A stretch of 64,000 bases of DNA from Gracilinanus agilis (Eukaryota): positions 64,065,387 to 64,129,386 of the forward strand of contig NC_058134.1 of the NCBI RefSeq assembly GCF_016433145.1, given 5' to 3'. Numbering within the stretch: the stretch's first letter is position 1; the number at the start of each line of letters is the position of its first letter. The notes below the pieces were generated by a model that did not search any database, was not told the origin of the DNA, and was given only the letters and a program-made list of their open reading frames with translations. A program made the position numbers and the translations under genes. Below, piece after piece: positions 5,988 through 59,966 of this stretch.

Positions 5988-6303
5988 NNNNNNNNNNNNN
6001 NNNNNNNNNNNNNNNNNNNNNNNNNNNNNNNNNNNNNNNNNNNNNNNNNNNNNNNNNNNNNNNNNNNNNNNNNNNNNNNNNNNNNNNNNNNNNNNNNNNN
6101 NNNNNNNNNNNNNNNNNNNNNNNNNNNNNNNNNNNNNNNNNNNNNNNNNNNNNNNNNNNNNNNNNNNNNNNNNNNNNNNNNNNNNNNNNNNNNNNNNNNN
6201 NNNNNNNNNNNNNNNNNNNNNNNNNNNNNNNNNNNNNNNNNNNNNNNNNNNNNNNNNNNNNNNNNNNNNNNNNNNNNNNNNNNNNNNNNNNNNNNNNNNN
6301 NNN
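5988..6303. other. Assembly gap (316 N)
   Basis: Run of N. Confidence 1.
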
Positions 6304-18066: not shown

Positions 18067-18261
18067 NNNNNNNNNNNNNNNNNNNNNNNNNNNNNNNNNN
18101 NNNNNNNNNNNNNNNNNNNNNNNNNNNNNNNNNNNNNNNNNNNNNNNNNNNNNNNNNNNNNNNNNNNNNNNNNNNNNNNNNNNNNNNNNNNNNNNNNNNN
18201 NNNNNNNNNNNNNNNNNNNNNNNNNNNNNNNNNNNNNNNNNNNNNNNNNNNNNNNNNNNNN
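18067..18261. other. Assembly gap (195 N); candidate location of MSRB2 exon 4
   Basis: Only gap between MSRB2 exons 3 and 5. Confidence 0.95.
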
Positions 18262-22760: not shown

Positions 22761-22865
22761 TGTGAAGCTCACTTGGGCCATGTATTTCCAGATGGGCCTG
22801 AACCAACTGGACAGAGATTCTGCATCAACAGCGTGGCACTGACATTTAAACCAAGCTCAAAATGA
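22761..22865 (+). CDS. MSRB2: MSRB2 terminal coding exon 5 (catalytic Cys)
   Basis: tttttcttggcag|TGT GAA GCT gives [34 protein letters not shown] then TGA (22863-22865); MsrB HLGHVF and RFCINS motifs. Confidence 0.97.
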
Positions 22866-25800: not shown

Positions 25801-27572
25801 GTGTAATAGCATAGGATAGAACTTAAACTATTCAGGGACTGGAAGTATTTCTTTTTTTGTTTTTATATGCCTAATTTCTAGCACAGTACATACTAGTACA
25901 TACATGTACACACAGTACATACTAGTACATACATGGAAAGCACTTAATAAATGCCAGCTGGCCAATTAACCAATTACAAAACAAATTTAAAGCTGGAAGA
26001 GTTCAGAGTAGAAAACTAAGTGCAAACTCATTAAAAAAAACACCAGGAAATTACTTATGTAAAAATGTGACTTTGGTTTTTAAATAAACATAATCGCAGA
26101 AATCACAAAAAGTTTTCTTTTTGCGATAGTCAGACTAGACAGAAACATTTAACCATGATGGGACCGTGTCTACACTGAGATACCAAAGGAATATGCTATG
26201 TCAGATTATTGTCTACTGCTCTTCAAATTGTCATGTTGCTGAAGTCCTTCAGACTTTCTAGGAAGAATTAAGTCTGCAGTGACCCTGGGCAAGTCATTTT
26301 AACCTCAGTCTGCCTTAGTTTCATCATCTTTAAAATGATAATAGTATAACATCCACTTTCCAGGTCTGTTGTGAGGTTAAAATGAGATAACATTTATAAA
26401 GCAGCCTTATATATAAAAGCCTTAAAGTGTTATATACATGCTAACCATACATATCATTATTATTAGTATTCAGAAATAAGGAGGCAGACAAGTAGATCAA
26501 GAGCCAAGCCTGAAGACAGGAAGTCCTGGGTTCAAATATGGCCTCAGACACTTTCTAGCTGTGTGACCTTGGGCAAATCACTTAACCCCAGTTGCCTACC
26601 CCTTACTACTCTTCTGACTTGGAACCGATTTTGACTTTAGAACAGAAGGCTTATATAGTCTGAGCTCTCCAAATATTATTTCATACATATAAATGTAATA
26701 TAGAAAAATAATATGTTGTAATTATAGTTGTTTTATAGTATTGTATTATAATATATGTAATAAATAAAATAAATATGTAATATTTATAAGGTTTGGAGAG
26801 CTTAGAAAATACCAAAAACCTGACTCCACCAAATTTTCAGTGATGATCATAATGCAAAGAGTCAGAGCCATAACTAAGGCAACCTGAGCTTTGCTTCAGG
26901 GCAATAAAATTTTAAGAGTACACACGTAACACTGGAGAATTTAAGAGGCTATGCAGTTTAAAATTTTGTTGCATTTTAATAGCATGTTCCACATTCCTTC
27001 AGCAGCATAAAAACTAAGTGATAAGGAGAGCTAAAATAGGAAGTTACCAGTTGGTAGTTGTCTTCTATTCTCTTCTCTCTTCCACTTACCTTCCCTCCCC
27101 TATCTTGAGCTCTGCATCCATTCAAGCTCCTCCTCAGCCTCATAGTACCCCAAATTCTGACTCCCAACTTTCAGGTGGTATCGCAAGGTCTCTCCTTCAC
27201 ATACCTCACACAGAAAGTGGTGGGAATTCAATGCTGAGTCATCTGTGGTGGATTTGAGGGAGCATCTAGTATGTTTCCCAGCTGTTGGCCAATTTCCTAT
27301 TGTCTAGCATGGGAAATCGTGTTTTTCCCTTTTTCCCAGCTTAAGGTTTTGTGCTCCTCCACCTAAACAATAATTTCTTTGAGCTACATTTAGGGTGACC
27401 AACATCTCAGAAAAGGTGTTCATTTTTGCTTTAATGGGGACGTAGGTTCATATCACATTATATGGCTGTATATACCATTATTGTGTGGCCTAAAAAATTT
27501 AGTGAATAAGTTATCAAGAACAGACCCAGGATCCATTTAAAAGGAACAACTCCACTCTCCCTAGTTGTAAGA

Positions 27573-27730
27573 CTAACGAATTGGCAGATGAGTTAATATA
27601 CCAATAGCAATAGGCATCTTGCGTAAATTGGGGCAGTTCCTTCTATATCCATCGGGACCATTGTATCCGAGGATTGGTTTGAGAGAAGAATATAGAAAGT
27701 CATGTCCTTGTGTCTCTTCCAGAGAATAAC
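27573..27730 (-). CDS. C17orf98/SPMAP1-like (DUF4542 family) protein, terminal coding exon 3
   Basis: Minus strand ctttccctgtggattgtctctag|GT TAT TCT gives (G)YSLEETQGHDFLYSSLKPILGYNGPDGYRRNCPNLRKMPIAIGILTHLPIR then TAG. Collinear with recalled human C17orf98 C-terminus [37 protein letters not shown]...THFPLF. 158 nt; phase 1 matches exon 2. Confidence 0.92.
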
Positions 27731-28088
27731 CTAGAGACAATCCACAGGGAAAGATTAGGTTCAGTCTGTTTTAAGGCCATTTATTCATTCATCTATTCTT
27801 AGTCAACATTACTACCTCCTATGGGTAAGACACTCTGCCGGATACTGAAGTAAAGAGATAAATAAGACATTAAGCCGATAACCTGGTAAGGTAGATAAGA
27901 CATATAATAATAAGAGACTGGTTTTGGAATCAGAGGACCCGAGTTCCAATGTTGGTTCTGTTACCATCTATTGTGTGACTTTGGGCAAGTCCTTTCACTT
28001 TTCCAGGCTAATTTCCTTGACTATAAAATGAGTTAGATTAGATGACCTATAAAAGATACCTTTCAACTCTAAATCTATAAACCTAGAT

Positions 28089-28295
28089 CCATGTTAATGA
28101 ACCTTTGGCACTTGTGCCAAGTGTACTAGAGAGGGCTGCTTCCTTCCCCCTCTCCACACATGCCTGAGGACATTTCTCTCATCACCTGCCTCTCTGTCCA
28201 GCCTCCCTCCCCTGTCTGGGGTAAGGCAGGGGGCTCACATGCAGTGTGAGGGTTGCAGTTTGGGCACTTGGTTTCTAAAAGGTTCACCATCACTC
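28089..28295. mobile_element. Non-autonomous hAT element, family C
   Basis: Right terminus aaggttcaccatcactc and degenerate left terminus ccatgttaatgaacct; 8-bp duplication acctagat/tcctagat (7/8). Confidence 0.7.
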
Positions 28296-28749
28296 TCCTA
28301 GATTATATATAAAAATGCTAAGAACCTATTGATGCTTAAGATAAATAGAAGGAGGGGAATAGACCAAAGGTAAGTATTACAAAGGAGGCCACTGCAACAG
28401 TTCAAGTTAGAAGCAGGGAGAATTTTGATTTATTGACAGGGCAAAAAAATAAAAGATAAAAGAGGAATCAGATTACAACTTTGTAAACAAAAACAACTTA
28501 GAAAATCTTAAAAACTATGATCAAAACAATGGCCAGTCAGAACTCCAGTAGATTGAGGATTAATCATAACTTCCAATTCTTGGCAAAATGGTGATAGAAT
28601 AGAGTTGAAATTAAATGCCCTTTCAGGCAAAGCCAATGCGTGGACAAATTTTGCTTAACTACACTTATTTGTTACAAGGGTTAGGTCAGCTTATAGGGTT
28701 AAGAGTTATGAAAGGGAAAGGAGAGAGATGAGTTATAGTGATGTCGAGG

Positions 28750-29300
28750 AATACAACAACAATGCATACATTAAGCACCTGCTATTTGCTAGACACTTTC
28801 CTAAGCACTGAGGATACAAAGAAGGGTGCAAAACAGCCCCTGATCTAGTCTAATGGGAGAGACCACATGCAAATAACTATGTACAAACAACATATATACA
28901 GGATGAGTTGGAGATAATCAACAGAAAGTACTACTAGCATTCATAGTGATCAAGAAAGACTTCTGGTAGAAGTTGAGATTTTAGCCAGGACTTGAAAGAA
29001 ATCAGAAAATCCAGGAGACACACAAGGAGGGAGAAATTCCAGGAATGTGAGACAGCCAAATGAAAATGCATAAAGTCAGGAGACCGCAAACTCAAGAACA
29101 ACATAAAAAGACCAGTGTCACTATATTTCAGGGTGAAGAGGAGAGTAAGATGCAAGAAAGGAAAGAGACAAGTTATTAAGGGCTTAAAAAACCAAACCGG
29201 ATTTTATATTTGAAACCAGAGGCAAATAGGGAGCCCCTGGAGAGGACTTGTGCTTCAGGAAGATCAATTTGATATTTGAATGGAGAATGGACTGGAGTAG
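28750..29300 (-). mobile_element. L2 LINE fragment (antisense)
   Basis: cattaagcacctgctatttgctagacact... and downstream L2-type body. Confidence 0.7.
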
Positions 29301-29399
29301 GGAAACACGAGGAAAGAAAGAAACAAAGAGAGGGGGCAGGGTGGGAAGGAGGGAGGAAGGAAGGAAGAAAGAAAGATGAATGAAATAAAACTTTAAAAT

Positions 29400-31330
29400 A
29401 CACAAAAGAGACCAGAATCAAAAGAATAGAATTTTCAGAATTTAAACTGTATTATAAAGCAAATCAAAGCCATTTCAAAATCGAAGAGTAGATTAATAAA
29501 CCAGACTAGACAAGGAAGGATCAGAAATAAGATAACTCAAAAACCCAATGTTTATTTAACCCCAAAGCTTAACTCTACCTTAAAAAGAATTCTCTATATG
29601 AGAACTTCCAGTAAAACTAGAATTCAGTCTAGCAGAAATCAGGCTTAGAGCAACATCTCACACCATATTCCACCACAAATTCGAAATGAATACATTGTCT
29701 GAATGTTAGAAATCATACCAAAAAGAGAAGGAAACCATGTATGTGCCTTTCACAGCTATGGGAAGGGGATAAAATAATCAAATATGGGATAGATGAGATT
29801 TTAAGAGATAAAATAGATTATTTATTCTGCTTACACAAAATTGAAAAACTTCTACAAGGAACAAAATTAATGTATCTTAAGATAAAAAAAAGGGAAGCAA
29901 TCAATTGGAGAAAAGTTTTATATGAAATATCTCTAAGGGTCTGATATCCCAAATATACAGGCAACAGAGAGAAATATATATGACAAAAAGTCATTCCTTA
30001 ATAGAATAAACAACAGCTGATATAAACAAACAGTTCTTAAAAGAACTGCAAACTACTAACAGTCATATGAATGCTTCAGATTCTAATGATAAGAGAAATG
30101 CAAATGAAACAACTCTTCACCTTTCAGCCATCAAAATGGCAAATATGACATATAAATAGTATAATTAGTGGCAGCAGGGCTGTGGAAAGTTTGGCAAACT
30201 AAAGCATTAACGATAGAACAGTGAATTGTTAATTATTCTGGCAAAGGATTTGAAAATTTTCAAATTAAGTGACTGGAATATTCACATCCTATGCTAGGTA
30301 TATCCTTCCCCAAGAAAGTAAAAAACCAAAAAAAAAAAAAAAGGCATGCTACACACCAAAATATTTATAGAAGTACTTTTCATGGTAGTAAAGAATTGGA
30401 AATAGGATGTCCAGTTATTGAGGAATTGCAAAACAAATTATGGTACATGAGTATAAAGGAATATTATTTTGTAAGAAATCATTAATATTATGGATATAGA
30501 GAAGCATGGAAAGAATGATTATGAACTGATGCAAAGTGAAAGTAATGAGAGTCAGAAAACTAATGTTTGAAATGACAATAACAATGTAATTGAAAAAAGC
30601 AACAATAACCAAATAATCAAAACTGAATGTTGTGAAATCATATTGACTAAGGGGCAGCTAAGTGACTCAGTGAACTGAGTGCTTGGCATGGAGTTGGTAG
30701 GACCTGGGTTCAAAGCTGACCTCAGACACTTTCTAGATGTATGACCCTGGACAAATCACCTCAATTGCCTAGCTCTTACCTCTCTTCTGGAATTAATATT
30801 TAGTATCAATTCTAAAAGAAAAGGTAAGGGTTAAAAAAATTATGTTGACCATGTCTAGCCTTAAAGAAAAGCTATGAGAAAACAACCTCCACACACTTCT
30901 TTAGAAAGCTGGGGATCCTATAGGTATGGAACACTGAATATAATGTGAGACTTTTTAATTGATTAGATTCACTGAATTATTTTCTTTTTTTATTCTTTGT
31001 TATAAAAGATTGATATTTGATCAATAATATGGAAATAGGTCCTGATCAATGACACATGTAAAACCCAGTGGAATTGTGCGTCAGCTAGAGAGGGGGGGTG
31101 TGGAGGGAGAGAAAGGAAAGAACATGAATCTTGTAACCATGGAAAAATACCCTAAATTAATTAAGTAATTAAAATTTTAAAAGATAGATATTTGAGGGGA
31201 GGAGAGGAAAAGATACAGGGGGAAAGGTAGGTGAGAGAAAAACAAAAGATATCAATAAATTATTTTTTAAATAAACACAAGAGTAAAAAAAAGTCAGAAG
31301 GGGACAGACATGAGAATCTGGGTGGTTTCA
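29400..31330 (+). mobile_element. Old L1 (ORF2 end + 3' region) with nested SINE (30651-30838) and younger L1 3' end (~31020-31190)
   Basis: A-rich ORF2-like sequence (aagagaaatgcaaatgaaacaactc...), many stops; nested copies recognised by identity to other copies in the window. Confidence 0.8.
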
Positions 31331-32034
31331 GCACTGCCGTTTCAAATACATAAATACATATAAACTTATGTATATGTATATTTTAAAAGCTGTATGTAAT
31401 AGTTCCAGATTCATTAAATCTGGATTCATTCACTATAATAATAAATGATAAAAAAAAAAAGAAAAAAGTAGTCGAGAAAAACAATCCTATTTGATGATGA
31501 TTTGGAGGTGAAAGATGACGGAGAATATAGGCAAAGTTCATGGAAATATCATTAACAAAAATGGAGGTGTCTGGTAAAGGTCCAGGTTGAGAAGAGGGCA
31601 GGAAAAGATGGTAAGCTCATTTCCAAGCTGCTCTCCCCCAGAGGCTTAGAAAAGGAACAGTCAACCACAAGCTTGAAAGTCAGCAGCAGTTAACACACCC
31701 TAGGATGGCATAAAGTTTCTGCTGTCATATTTTGCCATATTTTGCTTTCCCGTGGGCTTCTAAGAGGAAGCATTTTGATGAAAGGACAGATCATTCTCTT
31801 TAATCCATCAGTGTTTGGCTCCCAGGTAGACATTTTACTCCTTCCTGAATTCCCTAATGTCACTTCCCTACCCAGGTTTTAGAACAAAGAAGAGCAATCA
31901 TGTCTCCCTCGAGCTGAGTTACAAGACCTCAGAGAGGAGTCCTGATGGAGATGGCATTCTTGCGCATGGATATTTGAATGTCAGTTTTACTTTCTCCATT
32001 TAATGGAGTAGTAAAAAGAATACTAGTCCTACTG

Positions 32035-32290
32035 CAGGAGAGGAAACATATAAGAAAAACAACTGCTGGAACGCATGGGTTGGGGTGGACATGATTGAGG
32101 ATGTGGACTCGAAACTACCACACCAATGCAACTACCAACAATTTGGAAATAGGTCTTGATCACGGACACATGATAAAACCAGTGGAAATGTGTGTCGGCC
32201 AAGGGTGGGAGGAATGCGGGGGGTGAAGGGGAAAGTAGCATGAATCATGTAACCATGTTAAAAATGAATATTAATAAATGTTTAAAATTT
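32035..32290 (+). mobile_element. L1_Mdo-type 3' end
   Basis: aacaatttggaaataggtcttgatc...catgaatcatgtaaccatg followed by an A-rich tail. Confidence 0.88.
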
Positions 32291-32704
32291 AAAAAAATAT
32301 TTTTATAATTTTATTTCAATATAATTGGACAATATGGAAATGTTTTGTATGATAATACATATTTAACCCAGTTCTAATTGCTTGCCAGGGGAAATTTGTT
32401 ATTACATGTAATTGATTTTTTTAAATTAAATTAAATTTAAAAATGTTAAATGTTCTTTTAGGAGTTCTTAGACTTCATCACACTGTCAACAGGGTCCATG
32501 GTTAAGAACTGATGTCTTCAAAGAAGTTGCCTTTACTGGCTACATTGACTCTCTCATTTCCCAGCACTTTGCAAATCCTTGCAATTAGATTTTCAACTCA
32601 AAAGAAACTGTTCTAAGCTGTCAAATTCTAAGGTTGGAAGCAAGTAGTCTGAACCAGATTAAAATGTAATTGAGAAATATTTAGAAAAATAAATAAAAAC
32701 ACAA

Positions 32705-32705
32705 T

Positions 32706-32739
<34 letters not shown>

Positions 32740-32740
32740 A
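32705..32740. repeat. (CAA)n microsatellite
   Basis: CAA trinucleotide run. Confidence 0.93.
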
Positions 32741-35279
32741 GAATACTAGTCCTAGAATTGAGTGGGAGGGGAGGCAATTCTGGGTTCAAATATTGTCTCT
32801 GGCCCCTAATAGGTACTCCTAGAGCTAACACCCCAGGCTAACCACTTGACCTGTCTTCTGGACCTCAGTTTCCTCATCTATAATCTGTAAAATGGTGGTA
32901 GTAAAAATAGTATCCACTTCACAGGATGGTCGTGAGGGTCAAATGAGCTAGTGCCTTAGAAAGCCCTTTGTATAACATTTATACCAATCTGTGCTGCTAT
33001 TTAGCTATTCTCAATGCAGATTATATTATGAGGATGGATTGGATATGGAAAGTAAACAGCCTGGTGGAGTGGAAAGTGAATTGTCTCTGGAGCCAGAAGA
33101 CCTGGGTTCAAATCTAACTTACTTTATTGTTTAACTTACTACTTGTGTGACCTCGAGCAAATAAGAGCTTTAGTTTCCTCATCTTTAAATTGACAGCGTT
33201 GGGGCAGCAAGGTGGCTCCATGGATAGAGCTCCTGCTCCTGGGTTCAATCTGGCCTCAGACATTTCCTAGGTGAGTGACCCCTGGACAAGTCACTTAACC
33301 ACAATTGCCTACCACTTACCACAATTTGTCTTGGAACCAAAAATGTGTATTGTTTCTAAGCTAGAAGGGAAGGGTCTAAAACAAATAAATAAAGTAAAAT
33401 AAAATAAAACGACAAGGTTGCAAAATAGACCTTGAGGCCCCCTTCCAATTCTTGGTGTTATGATCCAATGATCTAAGAACCACAGAAAGAAGGTTCTATG
33501 TCATTCATAATAGCATGGTGCTAATGTTAATTGCTCCCCTCCATTCACTACATCATTTAGTGTCATAAACAAAAGAATAATTAAAGTTATATTTGGATAC
33601 TGATTAGGCACTGATGGGAGGGATAATAGAAGGGAGGGCGGAGAGAATATTTCTAAGTAATCGGTACATATGACTGATTAGGAAATCTGTTTACGGACTT
33701 ATTTCTTCCTAGCATTTGGCCCTTGAAATAATTTTCTATGTGAATGTTAAAAGCCAGATGAAAAAAATAAATAAAACGACCCTGATTACTCTTCCTTGTG
33801 TTCCAATCAGCTGCATGTCAGTTTCTGAATAAACTTTAATTCCTTTGCTTCGTCTGTAGACAAGGAAATTTGCACCACAATTTTTTAAATTCCCCGTTAG
33901 GGGTCTTAAGGACAATTAGCAATTAAAATAATCCATTTTCCTACATTTCTGCTTCACAAACACAGTTGGCAGGATTGATTTGTCAGTCACATGTGCCACC
34001 CCAGTGAGTTCCTATTAGCTTTCACATCCATCCACAGTCCCTTGATCTAATACCTCACTTTGGTGTGGTGATATTCTGGACTTCTATACTAGTAGTCCTT
34101 GGAGAAAGGCCTGCTATGTAGAAGAGGTTTAAGGGTGATCCTAGAAATGGATGAAGTCAGGAGCACATTGGCTAACTAGTTTTACTGGGAGATCATTACC
34201 AGGATGTCAAAAAAAGGCCCTAAGTCCCCCACTTTCCTTTCCACTTACACAATGATTTTGGTAGAAAAGAAGATGGTAGACAGAAAGGGGAGCAGAGAGT
34301 ATTAAGAATTCCATACCTTTAAGCTCATCTATAAATATTAGTTTAACTATAGATTCTTTAAATCAATTGATCAATCAATCAGCTAATGTGGTATCATGGA
34401 AAGAATTGGTTCCATTAATAGTGATAGTTGGCATTTATATAGCATGTGAAGGTTGGCAAAGTGCTTTATATATAGTAGTAGTATTTCATTTGATCTTCAC
34501 CATCACCCTTTAAAACTAGGTGCTACTATTATCCCCATTTTACAGATAAGGAAACTGAGAAAGGTTATATGGACTTGCCCAGGGTCACATACAGGTAGCA
34601 AGTATTTGAGGCAGAAATTGACCCCAAGCCCAGCATTCTATCTTCTTCTCCCTCATGAAACAATAGCAAAAATGTAAGATGCATCATTTCATGGGGATGC
34701 TGCACATCACTTCTTGCAATGCTCATGATAAACATAAGTAATAAAAGAAAGAGACCAGCAAGAACACTGTCACAGATTTATCAGCTTCTACTATAGAGGA
34801 GAGCAGAGGCAGAAAGATCCTATGTTGAATTCTAGGCGGCAGTGAGGTGGCTCAGTAGGTAGAAAACTAGACCTAGAGATGGGAGATCCTGGGTTTAAAT
34901 TTTGACCTCAGACATTTCCTAGCTGTGTTACCCTGGGCAAGTCACTTAACTTCCATTTGCTTACCCTTTTTACCTCTCTTTTGCCTTGGAACCAATACAC
35001 TGCATTAATTCTAAGATGGAAGGTAAAGGATAAGATCCTTTAAATCAAATCAACATCTACTTTGATACTCAGTGACTTCTTTGTAAAGGCACAGAGAAGG
35101 ATGGTAAAAACTATATATTTAAAATATGACTCAGGCTTAAGAAATAAGAGGCCAAAGGTAGAGAATTTAGAAATCTCATGCCTATGTGCAATGAATATTT
35201 TCTCCTAGAAGGGAGTTCTGGGGAGACAAATTATAGCCCAGATGAATAATCGTTAAGTTGTCCACAAGTAATAACAGCA

Positions 35280-35540
35280 ACTAGGTGCTGCAGTGGATTT
35301 TGGGGGCTAGAGTCAGGAAGACTCATTCTCCTGAGTTCAAATCTGACTTCAGACACTTACTAGATGAATGATGCTGGGCAAGTCACTTAACCCTGTTTGC
35401 CTTGGTTTCCTTATCTGTAAAGTGAGCTGGAAGAAGGAAATGGCAAAGCATTCCAGAATCTCTGCAAAGATAACCCTCAATGAGGTCATGAAGAATTGGA
35501 CACGACTGAAACAAATGATCAAGAACAATAAAAATAACAA
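35280..35540 (+). mobile_element. MAR1-type marsupial SINE
   Basis: CORE-SINE body followed by the RTE-derived tail ggaaatggcaaagcattccag...ggacacgactgaaacaa. Antisense relatives at ~50600-50780 and ~53840-54080. Confidence 0.85.
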
Positions 35541-36137
35541 TGGAGGAGGCAGCAACCACAACCACAACAATAAGTTGACCTGCAAGGGGTCTTTGTCATC
35601 ATCCCAGCAGCTCCTGTCACTTGCTCTCAGATTATCTCCCATCTACTCTCTATATGTATATATACCTATTTATTTATATATTGACTTCCCTGATGGAATA
35701 ACATTGGGAAGTACATTAGATGAGGCTTACAAGCAAAAGTACGAACTAAACCCCCTAAACCCCTTAGGAAGACCTCTAGACCTCTGAATCAAATGGAAGC
35801 TCAGAAGATCCTAGATCCTTAGATGGAAGAGACTTCAGACATGATGTAACCCCAGAACTTTCATTTTATAGATGAGGAAACTGAGGTCCAAGAAGGTTAG
35901 ATGATCCAAGTCATCCAAGTAGTTTAAGTGTCGAGAGTAGGATTTAAAACTAGATTTTCTGACATCATAGCCAGACTTCTTTCCAATTTCATGAAATGTG
36001 AAATCAAATTGAGCTTAAGAGACAGAAAACCACTAGTTTCTAGTATGGAAATCATCAGGAACTTGTTTGTATCTAGTCAAATCATCAAACAAATTTGAGT
36101 TGACATCAAAATAAAATTATTCCTAAAGGGTCTAGAT

Positions 36138-36321
36138 CAGTGATTCCCAAAGTGGGCACCACTGCCCCCTGGTGGGTGCTGCAGCGATCCAGGAGGGATA
36201 GTGGTGGCCATGGGTGCATTTATTAATTGCTATTAAAATTTTAAAAAATTAATTTCCAGGGGGCTAAGTAATATTTTTTCTGGAAAGGGGGCAGTAGGCC
36301 AAAAGAGTTTGGGAACCACTG
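36138..36321 (+). mobile_element. Non-autonomous hAT element, family A (second copy)
   Basis: Same termini and body as 21056-21237; perfect duplication GTCTAGAT (36130-36137 and 36322-36329). Confidence 0.93.
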
Positions 36322-37089
36322 GTCTAGATGATGATGTTAAAAATCATGGCCTTGACTCCATGGAAAATTCTTTGACCTTGATGGAGTATAAGCAGCACCA
36401 GAATTCATATGTGCAGGCCTGGGGAATTAGAATTTTCGGGGCAGTGGACCTAAGATTCAGCTGCCTTTTGGATAGTTTGGTTGGCAACAAAGGGGGGACA
36501 TAAAGGCAAGGGGTCTTCAGCTGGGCAAACAGAAGAAATCAATACTTTAAGCATTCAATGAAGAAGAGCCCAGCATTCATGGAATTATAAAAACAAGAGC
36601 TAACATTTGTATATAGTACTTCATGGTTTCCATAGCCCTTTACAGGTGTTACCTCATACACTACCAGCATTGTTACCCTTTTTTTGACAAGATGAGGAAA
36701 TAGAGGCTGGAGAGAGTGGGGTGGGGGTGGAGGAAGGAAACACAGTTTCCTGATGATATATATGGCTTATGAAAAGGTGGAAGCTTCTCCTGCCTCCAAA
36801 TCCAGTGCTTTTTCCAAAGCAACATCACATGATGGAAAAGAACACCATAGCTCAGTGCACTGAAACTAAAAAAACAGGACCAAGGAACCAGATGTAGCAC
36901 AGCATACATTAGTGCAAGACACAGTTACAACCCAAAGATGGAGTGCAGCACATAGGCACAGAAAGAGAATTGCACAGTAGGCTTTTTTCTGATATTTCTG
37001 ACATTCCATATAGATAGAAACAAAAAGAAAAATATTAAAATACAAGTCACATAAAGATTCCTTCTCTTCTACTCTCCAATTTCATTTCA

Positions 37090-37470
37090 TTTTAATGTCT
37101 CTTCCTTTTTTCTTTTTTTCTTATCTTCCTAAGATTTTCCTCTCATTTATCATCTTTCCCCACCTTCTTTCTCTCTTTTTTCACATTGCTCTTGTTTCTT
37201 CTTTCTCTAATCTTTTAAAATCTCTATTCTTTCTCTCATCTCTCCCCTCATTTTCATCTCTTCTCCTTTCTTCTCCTGTCTCTCATACATTTCTGCTTTA
37301 TTTTTCCTTTCTTTCTCCTTCCTCTCTTTCATCTTTTTACTCTCTCCTTCCTTCCTTCCCTGTCTCTCTTCCTCTTCTCTTTTTTCTGTCTCTTTTTCTT
37401 TCTCCTCTACTCCTCCCTCTCTCTTTCTCTCTCTCTCTCTGTCCTTCTCTCTCTCTCTCCCTCCCACCTC
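37090..37470. repeat. CT-rich low-complexity polypyrimidine tract
   Basis: About 380 nt almost entirely C and T. Confidence 0.92.
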
Positions 37471-37829
37471 TTCCCCATCACTGAACAGGTATGAGAAAAT
37501 TTTTTCTTGATTTATTTTAGTTTTTATAATTTTCAATTCCAAATTCTCTCTTTCCCTCTGCCCATCCCATATTCATTGAGAAGACAAGAAATACAATAGA
37601 AGGGAAGGATATTTTTTAGAAAAATGTGGTGGTCTGCTTCCCTACAAATTCCATCTCAAAAAATTAGGGATATAGTATATCCTGAAAATTTCAGACTAAT
37701 TGTCTGCTGTGACTTTAAACATACCTTGATCTCAACCCCAAAAATATAACAAATACACACAGGACCAGATTCAGAGTTGATCCTTGCCTTGGAAGGAGTA
37801 ACCTTGAGAAATGATAATTTTCCTCTTAC

Positions 37830-37944
37830 CTGCCCCTGCTCTGTTTCTCCTCACCAAGTATTGGGCCATAGTTCCCATTTTATCTTTCTTCTCCTCTTCC
37901 TCTTCCTGTTCCTCCTCCTGCACACCAGGTAAAGTTCCTTTCCA
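37830..37944 (-). CDS. C17orf98/SPMAP1-like protein, coding exon 2
   Basis: Strong acceptor cttgtattcctactttatctttgcag|TGG and donor GCAG|GTAAGA. Gives WKGTLPGVQEEEQEEEEEKKDKMGTMAQYLVRRNRAGA(G), whose end matches recalled family QRYLNRRNWAGTG. 115 nt, phase 0 to phase 1. Confidence 0.9.
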
Positions 37945-39469
37945 CTGCAAAGATAAAGTAGGAATACAAGAACCAGAGAGAATAGGGAAAAGCAAACCCA
38001 TAAAAATACTCAACAGAGTCATGACTCTTAGGCCTCCAGTTTGGCTGTAAGTAACTTAAGATCAGTGGGGTCTTTCCAAAGAATAGACTTGGCTGGCGCA
38101 GAGAACGTCTAATATCAATAATGGGAATGGCTTCTCCCAGTTTTAGTTCTGCGTCCCTCCTTGATCTCCTCTCCATGCTCAGTCTTCACTGTAAGTATTT
38201 TCTCTTCCACATTGCCACTTTGTTCTGATGCTTTTACAGAAATTAATTCCCTCTGCATTTTGCTTTTGTTTTTGCAAATTTTCATGAAGCACCCCCACAT
38301 CCACCAATCAAAATGCTGACACAACAGAGCATGCTATACAGGAATAGCAATATTGCATTTGACTACTTCCTCTGCCTGACAGGCAAGTTGCTTAGTCATG
38401 TTCCATTCTTCATGATCCCATTAGAGGTTTTCTTGACAAAGATACTGAAGTGGTCTGTATGTCCTTCTTCAGTTCATTTTACAGAGAGGAAACTGAGGCA
38501 TAGAGAATTAAATGACTTGACCAAGGTCACACAGCTAGTAAGTATCTGAGGCCAAATCTGAACTCAGGTCTTCTTGACTCCAGGTCCCATGCTCTATCTA
38601 TTGCATCACCTAGATTATCTCTTATATTTATGCAATATAGTTTAGCCCTACTGTACAAATCTGCCACCTTCCCCTCCAAAAAAAATTATCCTCCTTTCCT
38701 ACCTCTCTGCCCTTTTCCCCATTCTTCACTTATGGAGAGGTGAGTTTGTATTCTAGATTGGAAAAAATTAGTCCCTGTAGAACCTTGGACAACCCACTCT
38801 GGGCCTTTTTCCTTGATTATGTAGGGGGACTTGGACTGGTCATTGAAGGTGACCTCTTCTTGGCTCTGAATATATTATGCTCTCTGATCTTATTAATTCC
38901 TTTCCATTGTTTAAAGTCCAACTCAAATGAACCTTCTCCAGGAAACTTTCTCTGATTCATGTCCCTGCACCCCTTGATAATTAATTTTCCCCTCTGATCC
39001 CCCCATTCTATTTTTGAACCTATTATGTATTACTATGTTTATGGCTATGTTGGTACTTTATCTGGGAATAAACTTTGTATTTCTCCCCACAAATACCCCT
39101 ACCACCAAGAACCTAGGCACATGCTATTAGATAACGACGTTTCCTGTGTTGTAGGATCATATGAATCATAACCTGAAGCTAGAGGGAAACCTAAAGGTCA
39201 TCCAGTCCAATAACCCTCAATTAATAGATGAAGAAACTGAGGTCTAGGAGAGTTTAAGTGATTTGCCCAAGAGTCTAAGTATCAGAGATAGAATTGATAT
39301 TTACTCCATTTTCCAAAGAAGAAAACTTGATTTAAGCTAAGAGGACCCAGGTTGGGATCTTGCCTCTGACACCATCTTATGTAAGCATTTTGAGCAAAAT
39401 GGACTTAACCTCTCTATACCTCAGGGACTCACTTTTTAAAAAAAATATTTTTAAATTTTTTCCTTGAAA

Positions 39470-40060
39470 AAAACTTGTACAAAAATATGCATAGACATTT
39501 TCTTTGTGGTGACAAAAAATTGGAAAATGAGGGGGTGTCCATCTATTGAGAAATGGCTGAATGCATTGTGATATATGTTAGTGATGGAATATTATTGTGC
39601 TCAAAGGAATAATGAACTGGAGGAATTCCATGTGAACTGGAAAGAGCTCCAGAAATTGATGCAGAGTGAAAGGAGCAGAACCAGGAGAACAATGTGGTAC
39701 AATCAAATATAATGGACTTCTCTACTAGCAGCAATGCAATGACCCAGGACAATCCAGAGGAACTTAGGAGAAAGAATGCTCTTCACATCCAGAGAAAGAA
39801 CTGTGGGAGCAGAAATGCATTAAAAAAATATATGATTGACGATGTAGTGCGATAGGGATGTGATTAGGGTTTTGATGTTAAAGAATCGCTCTACTGCAAA
39901 TATGAATAACATGGAATTAGGTTTTGAATGATACATGTAAAACCCAGTGGAACTGCTTGTCAGCTTTGGAAGGGGGAAAGGGGAGGGAGTGGGGAACAGG
40001 ATCATGAATCATGTTACCATGGAAAAATACTCTAAATAAAATTTAAAAATAAAAAAATAA
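39470..40060 (+). mobile_element. L1_Mdo-type 3' end
   Basis: gaaattgatgcagagtgaaaggagcagaaccaggagaac...catgaatcatgttaccatggaaaaat plus A-rich tail. Confidence 0.9.
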
Positions 40061-40084
40061 AACACATTAGATTATTGCCAAAGA

Positions 40085-40265
40085 TAAATAAAAATTTACT
40101 GTGTTTACATGATTCATTTTCTTTCCCTCCCTTTTTCCTTGCCCTCTCCCAGAGCCAACAAGCAAGTCCACTGGGTTCTACAAATGTTTTCACTTGATAC
40201 CTATTTCCATATTATTCATTTTTACTATAGAGCAATCTTTTAAAGGCAAAATCCCAAATCACATA
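40085..40265 (-). mobile_element. L1 3' end, antisense
   Basis: gtttacatgattcattttc...ctatttccatattattc, the reverse complement of the neighbouring L1 end. Confidence 0.8.
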
Positions 40266-40973
40266 CTCAGGGGCTCACTTCATGTTGGAGTGGGCTAGAT
40301 GACCTCTGTGATCCCTCTCAGCTCTACTTCTGTGTTCCTGTGAAACTTGAGCCTCAAGGAATTCCCAGCTGGTCAAGCTCCTTCATTTTGTAGATGTTGC
40401 AGGGAAATGACTTTCCCAAGGGCACATGTTTCATTGGATATTTCTGAGAAGTACCCAAAGGGTCCAGAAAGTTGATATTAGATCACAAAGCAGATCTTAT
40501 TCAAGTTTCACTCTCTGTGGCTGGGCAACCCTGACCAAATCATTTGAACTTCTCAATGCCCTAGGCATCTAAGAGTATTTTTTTAATGTTATATTCTAGC
40601 TCAGAATCAATACTGTTTATTGGTTCCAAGGCAAAAAAGTGGTAAGGGCTAGTCAACGTGGGGTTAAGTGACTTGCCCAGGATCACACAGCTAGGAAATA
40701 TGTGAGGTCAGATTCATCTAAGAGCTTTAAATTACAAAAAAGATACCCATCAGAAGCTGTCCTGGGGAAATCACAGATCCAATTTTTTAAAAATCCCAGT
40801 TATACTCATTTCTATATACCCTTTTCAAACAAAATCAAACAATTCTAATCACTTTCAAATGTAAGCTCTTAGAAGAGTAAGATGCCTTCCTACTCTTATG
40901 TGTATACATCCAATCTAGAATAATTTATTATCTTAATATACCCAAGCCATGCTGGTCTACAATACATACATAG

Positions 40974-40975
<2 letters not shown>

Positions 40976-41013
<38 letters not shown>

Positions 41014-41022
41014 CACACACAC
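40976..41022. repeat. (CA)n microsatellite ((UG)n in the minus-strand pre-mRNA)
   Basis: CA run with one interruption, about 50 nt from the exon donor at 41070. Confidence 0.95.
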
Positions 41023-41070
41023 TCAATTTTTTGCTTATTCCTTGAATAAAAGAAAGCATAAAGAACTTAC

Positions 41071-41325
41071 TGGATCTCTTTCCTGAGGAAATCGAGGTGA
41101 AGCCTTGGTTGCAAAATAGGCAACCAAGTGGGGGTCCTTCTGAGCATTGTAAGGGGGAATGACACTCTTCAGGTTTGACAAGAAATTTGGGGACCCTTTT
41201 GATAGGCTGTCCACTGCAATACAATCCAGAATGAACCCTTTTTCCCTATACCACAAATTAGGGGCTGAACCTGGTGGTACAAACATTTTTGACAGACTAC
41301 CCCACCTCTGTTTCTTAGGCATCAT
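41071..41325 (-). CDS. C17orf98/SPMAP1-like protein, first coding exon
   Basis: MMPKKQRWG...WYREKGFILDCIAVDSLSKGSPNFLSNLKSVIPPYNAQKDPHLVAYFATKASPRFPQERDP. Contains EKGFILD and the IPPYN signature. Donor CCA|GTAAGT; 255 nt, phase 0. In-frame TAG lies four codons upstream of the first ATG. Confidence 0.92.
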
Positions 41326-45991: not shown

Positions 45992-46266
45992 NNNNNNNNN
46001 NNNNNNNNNNNNNNNNNNNNNNNNNNNNNNNNNNNNNNNNNNNNNNNNNNNNNNNNNNNNNNNNNNNNNNNNNNNNNNNNNNNNNNNNNNNNNNNNNNNN
46101 NNNNNNNNNNNNNNNNNNNNNNNNNNNNNNNNNNNNNNNNNNNNNNNNNNNNNNNNNNNNNNNNNNNNNNNNNNNNNNNNNNNNNNNNNNNNNNNNNNNN
46201 NNNNNNNNNNNNNNNNNNNNNNNNNNNNNNNNNNNNNNNNNNNNNNNNNNNNNNNNNNNNNNNNNN
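45992..46266. other. Assembly gap (275 N)
   Basis: Run of N. Confidence 1.
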
Positions 46267-52043: not shown

Positions 52044-52233
52044 NNNNNNNNNNNNNNNNNNNNNNNNNNNNNNNNNNNNNNNNNNNNNNNNNNNNNNNNN
52101 NNNNNNNNNNNNNNNNNNNNNNNNNNNNNNNNNNNNNNNNNNNNNNNNNNNNNNNNNNNNNNNNNNNNNNNNNNNNNNNNNNNNNNNNNNNNNNNNNNNN
52201 NNNNNNNNNNNNNNNNNNNNNNNNNNNNNNNNN
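52044..52233. other. Assembly gap (190 N) within an L2 remnant
   Basis: Run of N; flanks are L2-like. Confidence 0.98.
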
Positions 52234-59757: not shown

Positions 59758-59966
59758 NNNNNNNNNNNNNNNNNNNNNNNNNNNNNNNNNNNNNNNNNNN
59801 NNNNNNNNNNNNNNNNNNNNNNNNNNNNNNNNNNNNNNNNNNNNNNNNNNNNNNNNNNNNNNNNNNNNNNNNNNNNNNNNNNNNNNNNNNNNNNNNNNNN
59901 NNNNNNNNNNNNNNNNNNNNNNNNNNNNNNNNNNNNNNNNNNNNNNNNNNNNNNNNNNNNNNNNNN
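59758..59966. other. Assembly gap (209 N)
   Basis: Run of N. Confidence 1.

Follow-up and report, generated by a model that had tools for sequence, protein, structure and literature searches.

SPMAP1 (C17orf98; mouse 1700001P01Rik) is a small sperm protein that is counted among the additional external microtubule-associated proteins (MAPs) of sperm doublets (PMC11779644; review PMC13406575), and C17orf98 has served as a marker for early round spermatids in humans (PMC9579339). Here we describe a minus-strand gene of this family at positions 27573-41325 of a 64,000-nucleotide stretch of the genome of the marsupial Gracilinanus agilis (contig NC_058134.1; the whole stretch is called the window, and coordinates count from its first letter). 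The gene lies next to MSRB2 and is a paralog of SPMAP1, which the same assembly encodes elsewhere beside RPL23. We refer to the MSRB2-linked, SPMAP1-like genes as L type and to true, RPL23-linked SPMAP1 as S type. No paper on an MSRB2-linked SPMAP1 paralog, or on the evolutionary picture drawn below, was found in the literature that could be searched.

Structure and annotation of the gene

Joining the exons by script gave a gene of three coding exons whose 528 nt of spliced sequence encode an uninterrupted open reading frame (ORF) of 175 aa. An exact splice mapper, used for intron phases, returned a single solution, with phases 0 then 1 and GT-AG borders. The exons, borders, phases and 175-aa frame of the original prediction, which had been read from the sequence, were thus reproduced exactly. 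From the start codon onwards, the gene is arranged as follows.

41071..41325, minus strand: coding exon 1, 255 nt, codons 1-85; ATG at 41325; donor GTAAGT
37945..41070, minus strand: intron 1, 3,126 nt, phase 0, GT-AG
37830..37944, minus strand: coding exon 2, 115 nt; acceptor ...TTTGCAG after a polypyrimidine tract; donor GTAAGA
27731..37829, minus strand: intron 2, 10,099 nt, phase 1, GT-AG
27573..27730, minus strand: coding exon 3, 158 nt including the stop TAG at 27575-27573; acceptor ...TCTCTAG
27430..27435, minus strand: ATTAAA, a possible polyadenylation signal 137 nt 3' of the stop; weak consensus match

An in-frame stop lies three codons 5' of the ATG at 41325. Exon 1 holds the N-terminal conserved block (REKGFILDC..AV and IPPYNAQKDPH), exon 2 a marsupial-specific acidic segment encoded by a GAR-rich stretch (EEEQEEEEEKKDK) followed by the conserved YLxRRNxAGAG, and exon 3 the C-terminal conserved block (GH..KP..GYNG..GYRRN.P.LRK.P). 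The exons were searched separately against Pfam, where the SPMAP1-like family PF15075 (former DUF4542) has a gathering cut-off of 27 bits. Exon 1 alone matched this profile with 54.4 bits (E 2.2e-14, profile 1-49) and exon 3 alone with 42.4 bits (E 1.2e-10, profile 93-131), and no Pfam match was returned for exon 2 searched alone. The scores of exons 1 and 3 are far above chance and bear out the placement in the SPMAP1/C17orf98 family that had been made from its motifs.

Public annotation already lists the gene, and under the correct family name. An exhaustive HMMER search with exon 1 recovered a database protein of 175 aa that matches the exon at 100% identity and whose full sequence is that of the spliced ORF; this protein (P0001) is RefSeq XP_044534864.1, 'uncharacterized protein C17orf98-like [Gracilinanus agilis]', and carries a precomputed PF15075.12 assignment over its full length. 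The called gene in GCA_016433145.1 spans 13,753 bp, exactly from 41325 to 27573. The gene is therefore not hidden, as it had first been described, and the accompanying guess that an uncharacterised LOC model might already exist was correct. Marsupial orthologs are annotated in 10 species (NCBI and Ensembl models) that span the didelphid-australidelphian split, in agreement with the expectation that the gene had been kept in marsupials. The Monodelphis protein (A0A5F8GTY3) is 90% identical to that of G. agilis, and proteins named 'C17orf98-like' or 'SPMAP1-like' in Notamacropus, Dromiciops, Trichosurus, Phascolarctos, Vombatus, Petaurus and Sarcophilus are 58-69% identical to it.

Two SPMAP1-type genes in one genome

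Membership of PF15075 and the three-exon structure shared with SPMAP1 would also suit a simpler history, in which the window gene is the sole marsupial SPMAP1 ortholog, moved from the RPL23/CWC25 neighbourhood to that of MSRB2. A search with eutherian SPMAP1, however, recovered a tight cluster of 154-aa marsupial proteins that are ~73% identical to the eutherian protein, one of these sequences being common to Monodelphis and a second XP_0445-series accession. GCA_016433145.1 itself encodes a 154-aa SPMAP1 (P0215) on a separate 523 Mb contig, directly downstream of a 140-aa Ribosomal_L14 (RPL23) gene. The S gene is also present in five of the L-bearing marsupial species in our trees and in further listed marsupials, and the window protein falls in another clade than SPMAP1 (see below). 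A 154-aa SPMAP1 beside RPL23 in the same assembly means that marsupials carry both genes, and a relocated sole ortholog, which is extremely improbable, is ruled out by it. The window gene, whose neighbour is MSRB2 and not RPL23, is thus a paralog of SPMAP1 and not its relocated ortholog, as the original prediction had proposed.

The tortoise L, frog L and tortoise S genes, mapped to their own loci, agree in intron phases (0/1) and in the lengths of the last exon (158 nt) and the middle exon (100 nt); an additional 5' coding exon is present in the tortoise L model. The last exon of the G. agilis gene is also 158 nt long, and its middle exon, at 115 nt, is 15 nt longer than those of the other three. 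Since L and S agree in their intron phases and in having a last exon of 158 nt, a duplication at the DNA level is supported, which agrees with the old duplication that had been postulated. A retrocopy was considered and is ruled out by introns at the same phases as in SPMAP1.

Phylogeny, gene order and age of the duplication

We built three maximum-likelihood trees (IQ-TREE, LG+C20 with posterior mean site frequencies, PMSF) of 60, 65 and 83 proteins, with molluscs, echinoderms and a hemichordate as roots. In all three, the vertebrate proteins fall into an S clade and an L clade. The S clade (support 99/92) unites eutherian, marsupial, monotreme and sauropsid SPMAP1 with salamander, pipid-frog, coelacanth, sturgeon/paddlefish and chondrichthyan proteins. 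Members of the L clade (100/97, then 100/99) are sharks, rays, bichir, sturgeon, coelacanth, lungfish, caecilians, frogs and salamanders, and within it the amniote members form a subclade (97/91, then 100/97) comprising turtles, a crocodile, a gecko, skinks and nine marsupial proteins. The window protein lies outside the S clade and inside the L clade, with 'C17orf98-like' proteins from sharks to reptiles. Heterodontus, Latimeria, Ambystoma, Lissotriton, Xenopus tropicalis, Hymenochirus, Chelonoidis and marsupials each have one protein per clade.

The gene order agrees with the trees. The last coding exon of an MSRB2 gene, which encodes the SelR domain, lies downstream of the SPMAP1-like gene in the window:

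22761..22865 (about), plus strand: last coding exon of the MSRB2 (SelR) gene; Pfam SelR PF01641, E 9.8e-14, profile 83-116 of 116

This match confirms the MSRB2 neighbour named in the original prediction, and a SelR gene is annotated at the same place, on the opposite strand and downstream of the SPMAP1-like gene, in GCA_016433145.1. The two genes are convergent, tail-to-tail, with their 3' ends ~4.7 kb apart. Views of 10 kb on each side of the gene showed the same arrangement for L genes of other species, at the following distances from the SelR gene.

Chelonoidis tortoise: 3.5 kb
Heterodontus (horn shark): 3.8 kb
Wombat: about 4.3 kb
Sugar glider: about 4.4 kb
Gracilinanus agilis: about 4.7 kb
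Xenopus tropicalis: 7.5 kb

In opossum, horn shark and tortoise, the S gene comes just downstream of RPL23, and two fused eutherian gene models that join PF15075 to PF00238 agree with this adjacency. The presence of both pairings, L-MSRB2 and S-RPL23, in shark and amniotes means that both arrangements predate the split between cartilaginous and bony vertebrates.

The marsupial L proteins sit on a very long stem branch (about 0.9-1.0 substitutions per site), and long branches can be misplaced. It could accordingly be asked whether the gene is a recent marsupial- or mammal-specific duplicate of SPMAP1 that diverged very fast and was drawn into the L clade as an artefact. An approximately unbiased (AU) test, however, rejected a tree joining marsupial L with mammalian S (difference in log-likelihood 43, p 0.0003), and the amniote L clade is supported at 97/91 and 100/97. 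Independently of the trees, the convergent MSRB/SelR neighbour is common to the L genes of tortoise, frog and shark, so that a recent duplicate would need adjacency to MSRB2 to have arisen twice by chance. We consider such an origin very improbable and treat it as ruled out by the trees, the AU test and the MSRB synteny that reaches down to sharks.

Judged from the trees and the microsynteny, the duplication that gave rise to L and S predates the last common ancestor of jawed vertebrates, because each clade holds species from chondrichthyans through mammals. It took place after the split from invertebrate deuterostomes and before the gnathostome crown group, a timing that is consistent with the 2R whole-genome duplication and on which the two genes are probably 2R duplicates. 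Human 10p12 (BMI1, PIP4K2A, NEBL, MSRB2) and 17q12 (PCGF2, PIP4K2B, LASP1, C17orf98) form a putative paralogon; a search of the literature on it found nothing usable. An equally ancient duplication in the jawed-vertebrate stem could instead have been small in scale and segmental, outside 2R. The immediate neighbours of the two copies do differ (MSRB2 and RPL23), neither having a counterpart beside the other copy. Both copies nevertheless date to the 2R time window (before the chondrichthyan-osteichthyan and after the invertebrate-deuterostome split), and several ohnolog pairs are presumably present around human MSRB2 and C17orf98 (10p12/17q12), so that we regard a segmental origin as unlikely.

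Distribution among vertebrates and naming of the family

To take a census of L, a profile search with 25 L proteins was followed by scoring with L and S hidden Markov models (HMMs), which assigned 80 proteins to the L type. The original prediction had seen the gene as a lineage-restricted one, found in marsupials. This does not hold, as MSRB2-linked orthologs occur in sharks, frogs and tortoises, and the L clade further takes in rays, bichir, sturgeon, coelacanth, lungfish, caecilians, salamanders, crocodile, gecko and skinks. Judged by source names and nearest relatives, no eutherian, monotreme, bird or teleost protein was among the 80 L-type proteins, whereas S clusters from eutherians numbered in the dozens. 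This absence from protein databases suggests that L was lost in eutherians. The proposal of a paralog retained in marsupials and probably lost in eutherians therefore stands for its first part, and for its second as a suggestion short of proof. The outputs of the family searches listed crocodilians, turtles, lizards, snakes, tuatara, sturgeons and bichir; birds and teleosts were absent from them for either paralog, and may have lost both L and S.

The names given to these proteins do not follow the two clades. Many frog proteins are called 'sperm microtubule associated protein 1' by NCBI (P0086, P0087, P0254, P0255, P0259, P0264, P0265, P0267 and P0271; locus L002). All nine scored as L type with the HMMs, and two of them (P0086 and P0087) are in the tree, where the frog proteins of the L clade are P0085-P0089, P0078, P0253, P0274 and P0300. 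The X. tropicalis L gene is also marked by its MSRB neighbour, and this species has a separate S-type gene (P0324). Orthology names in the SPMAP1 family are thus mixed up, with frog L genes called 'SPMAP1'.

In the frog Hymenochirus boettgeri (P0111, P0112, P0274), the S type is present as two very divergent copies, located on different chromosomes, in addition to one L copy. The two S copies share a stem of about 0.9-1.1 substitutions per site, marking an extra duplication with strong acceleration.

Remodelling and constraint in marsupials

In the alignment of L proteins, those from outside the marsupials share a central block, TGQxxGGTSxYGxLADRFQFxGAAA, and a 100-nt exon 2. All marsupial L proteins have this block replaced by a segment of the form RDxWSK...EEEEE...KEKMGPMA. 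The window protein has about double the number of acidic residues (18 vs 9-11) and stays basic, with an isoelectric point (pI) of 9.2. The acidic stretch of exon 2 is encoded by a purine-rich GAR run (gaggaggaacaggaagaggaagaggagaagaaagat; 37860-37915, minus strand), which looks like a codon-repeat expansion and accounts for the 15 nt by which this exon exceeds the 100-nt exon 2 of other vertebrates.

Tree paths between Gracilinanus and australidelphians measure 0.37-0.75 for L and 0.02-0.06 for S in the same species pairs. Among columns that are at least 80% conserved in 74 other family members, 32 of 60 are invariant in marsupial L, as against 27 of 94 other columns (odds ratio 2.8, Fisher p 0.004, at the protein level). 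In the G. agilis coding sequence, 5.5% of point changes would create a stop, and all marsupial models are intact. Taken together, these protein-level comparisons point to weakened but real purifying selection on marsupial L.

Two of the marsupial models differ from the others at their C-termini. In alignment A1 (columns 190-216), the Monodelphis model (P0076) ends in ...AFDVETETEER and the Sarcophilus model (P0084) in ...ITPLETGEHGGVLILN; both are without the family tail ...FGI.THLPIH that is kept in Gracilinanus and other marsupials. These tails could reflect a frameshift, a model artefact or local decay, and L may have partly decayed in some marsupial lineages.

Proposed history and function

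The best overall explanation, to which we give a probability of about 80%, is that the window gene is the G. agilis ortholog of the ancient L-type paralog of SPMAP1, with the following history. The last common ancestor of jawed vertebrates already carried two copies descended from one ancestral PF15075 gene, most probably through 2R; since then the S copy has remained just downstream of RPL23 and the L copy tail-to-tail with MSRB2. In most lineages outside the mammals both copies are retained, and among mammals only marsupials are seen with L. In the marsupial stem, the central linker was rewritten into an acidic, glutamate-rich segment, and fast evolution under some constraint followed.

As to function, a phmmer search aligned residues 27-174 of the window protein with residues 11-153 of the bovine C17orf98 homolog (PDB 8OTZ chain N / 9FQR) at E 9.3e-27. 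This is the only solved relative, and it sits in sperm doublet-microtubule structures; bovine SPMAP1 is the one family member known to associate with the outer doublet surface. By analogy, we infer the L protein to be an extended MAP that is expressed in spermatids and lies on the outer surface of flagellar doublets. It would be made in spermatids and bind the doublet surface as an extended strand that becomes ordered on the tubulin lattice, anchored through the N- and C-terminal conserved blocks that it has in common with bovine SPMAP1. An AlphaFold2 (AF2) model of the window protein has a predicted local distance difference test score (pLDDT) of 42 and a predicted template modelling score (pTM) of 0.18, too low for a usable model. 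The protein is predicted to be disordered alone; the low pLDDT fits a protein that orders only on the microtubule lattice. The acidic linker of marsupials probably alters or abolishes the contacts that the ancestral central block would have made.

Several points weigh against this explanation. The probable loss in eutherians and monotremes is judged from absence in protein databases, and the 2R assignment from tree timing and the putative 10p12/17q12 paralogon. Marsupials have another segment in place of the central third of the family profile, and the binding geometry may therefore differ from that of SPMAP1. Moreover, marsupial L evolves 6-17 times faster than marsupial S, the window protein is off the family majority at 17 of the 60 conserved columns (including H125Y in the AGAGHS motif, and F166I), and the Monodelphis (P0076) and Sarcophilus (P0084) models have aberrant C-termini.

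The rate, the divergent columns, some of which are didelphid-only (Y125, S50, I166), and the missing tail of the Monodelphis model might also mean that didelphid opossums carry no more than a relic, decaying or without function, whose ORF is intact by chance or owing to a recent loss of constraint, and that the RefSeq model is a prediction driven by similarity, with no product. The protein collection also held no short, possibly transcript-derived contig with a marsupial L protein. Against such a relic, the ORF and its canonical splice sites are intact here, as are the models in 10 marsupial species; with one single-base change in about eighteen (5.5%) leading to a stop, long neutral drift would have broken the ORF; and conserved columns are preferentially kept (p 0.004). 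We hold decay of the gene in didelphids to be distinctly unlikely and favour a gene that is still under selection, the L ortholog described above.

Other features of the window

A few further observations concern the surroundings of the gene. The called SelR gene ends at ~22842, and the in-frame stop was read at 22863-22865, a discrepancy of 23 nt that may reflect a different model of the last exon, with a stated product of 124 aa. Motif and Pfam searches located the last MSRB2 exon; the GWPSF-type motif of upstream SelR exons did not turn up when positions 1-22760 were scanned for it in six frames. The window contains six runs of N (assembly gaps or masked sequence):

5988-6303: N run
18067-18261: N run
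19830: N run
45992-46266: N run
52044-52233: N run
59758-59966: N run

None of the six is inside the SPMAP1-like gene, and two or three of them fall where upstream exons or introns of MSRB2 would be expected. PTF1A is not in the 64-kb window, in which no basic helix-loop-helix (bHLH) motif was found, and ten other long ORFs of the window gave no Pfam matches.

Implications and comparison with known systems

The gene itself is ordinary: its family is known, and RefSeq had predicted it correctly. Its modest value lies in the evolutionary picture. Read jointly, the results can be drawn together, tentatively and at slightly less than even odds, as follows. Jawed vertebrates would ancestrally have had two SPMAP1-type surface proteins of the sperm axoneme, 2R ohnologs on the RPL23 side and the MSRB2 side that have persisted for >400 million years; eutherians would have lost the MSRB2-linked one, and marsupials would have kept it, rebuilt its linker as an acidic segment and gone on to evolve it fast. 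If this is true, every model mammal and every solved sperm axoneme is without the MSRB2-linked copy, the sperm doublets of marsupials and most non-mammals bear a surface component that has no counterpart in current structural models, and many frog 'SPMAP1' annotations refer to the second (L) gene. SPMAP1 has an ancient sister gene, apparently with no counterpart in human, mouse or cattle, so that axoneme models based on eutherian sperm would leave out what is probably a surface MAP in most other vertebrates. What this adds to knowledge of the family is small: a probable history of two ohnologs, and frog genes that carry the wrong name. For practical purposes, the L-MSRB2 and S-RPL23 pairings are clean orthology markers, and the fast marsupial copy with its acidic linker offers a small test case for the divergence of sperm-tail accessory proteins.

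Among known systems, the closest comparison is with SPMAP1 itself. The window protein shares with it the motifs REKGFILD, IPPYNAQ, YLxRRNxAGAG and GYNGxxGYRRNxPxLR; both are small and basic (pI about 9), and both are encoded by three coding exons with phases 0/1 and a 158-nt last exon. They differ in sequence and length (36% identity to eutherian SPMAP1; 175 aa vs 154 aa), in belonging to different ancient clades, in their neighbour (MSRB2, not RPL23), and in the central segment, which in the window protein is swapped for a glutamate-rich stretch with ~2x the acidic residues. The L proteins of Chelonoidis (XP_032631586.2), Heterodontus (XP_067907741.1) and Xenopus tropicalis (XP_002933182.2) belong to the same clade as the window protein (100/99), and their genes have, like the window gene, a convergent MSRB/SelR neighbour, 3.5-7.5 kb away. 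The tortoise and frog genes also match it in exon phases and last-exon size, and non-marsupial L proteins as a whole are 35-47% identical to the window protein. Nearest of all are the marsupial orthologs, which all have the acidic central segment and are 58-90% identical to the G. agilis protein; they range from 168 to 185 aa in length, with the acidic run longest in didelphids.

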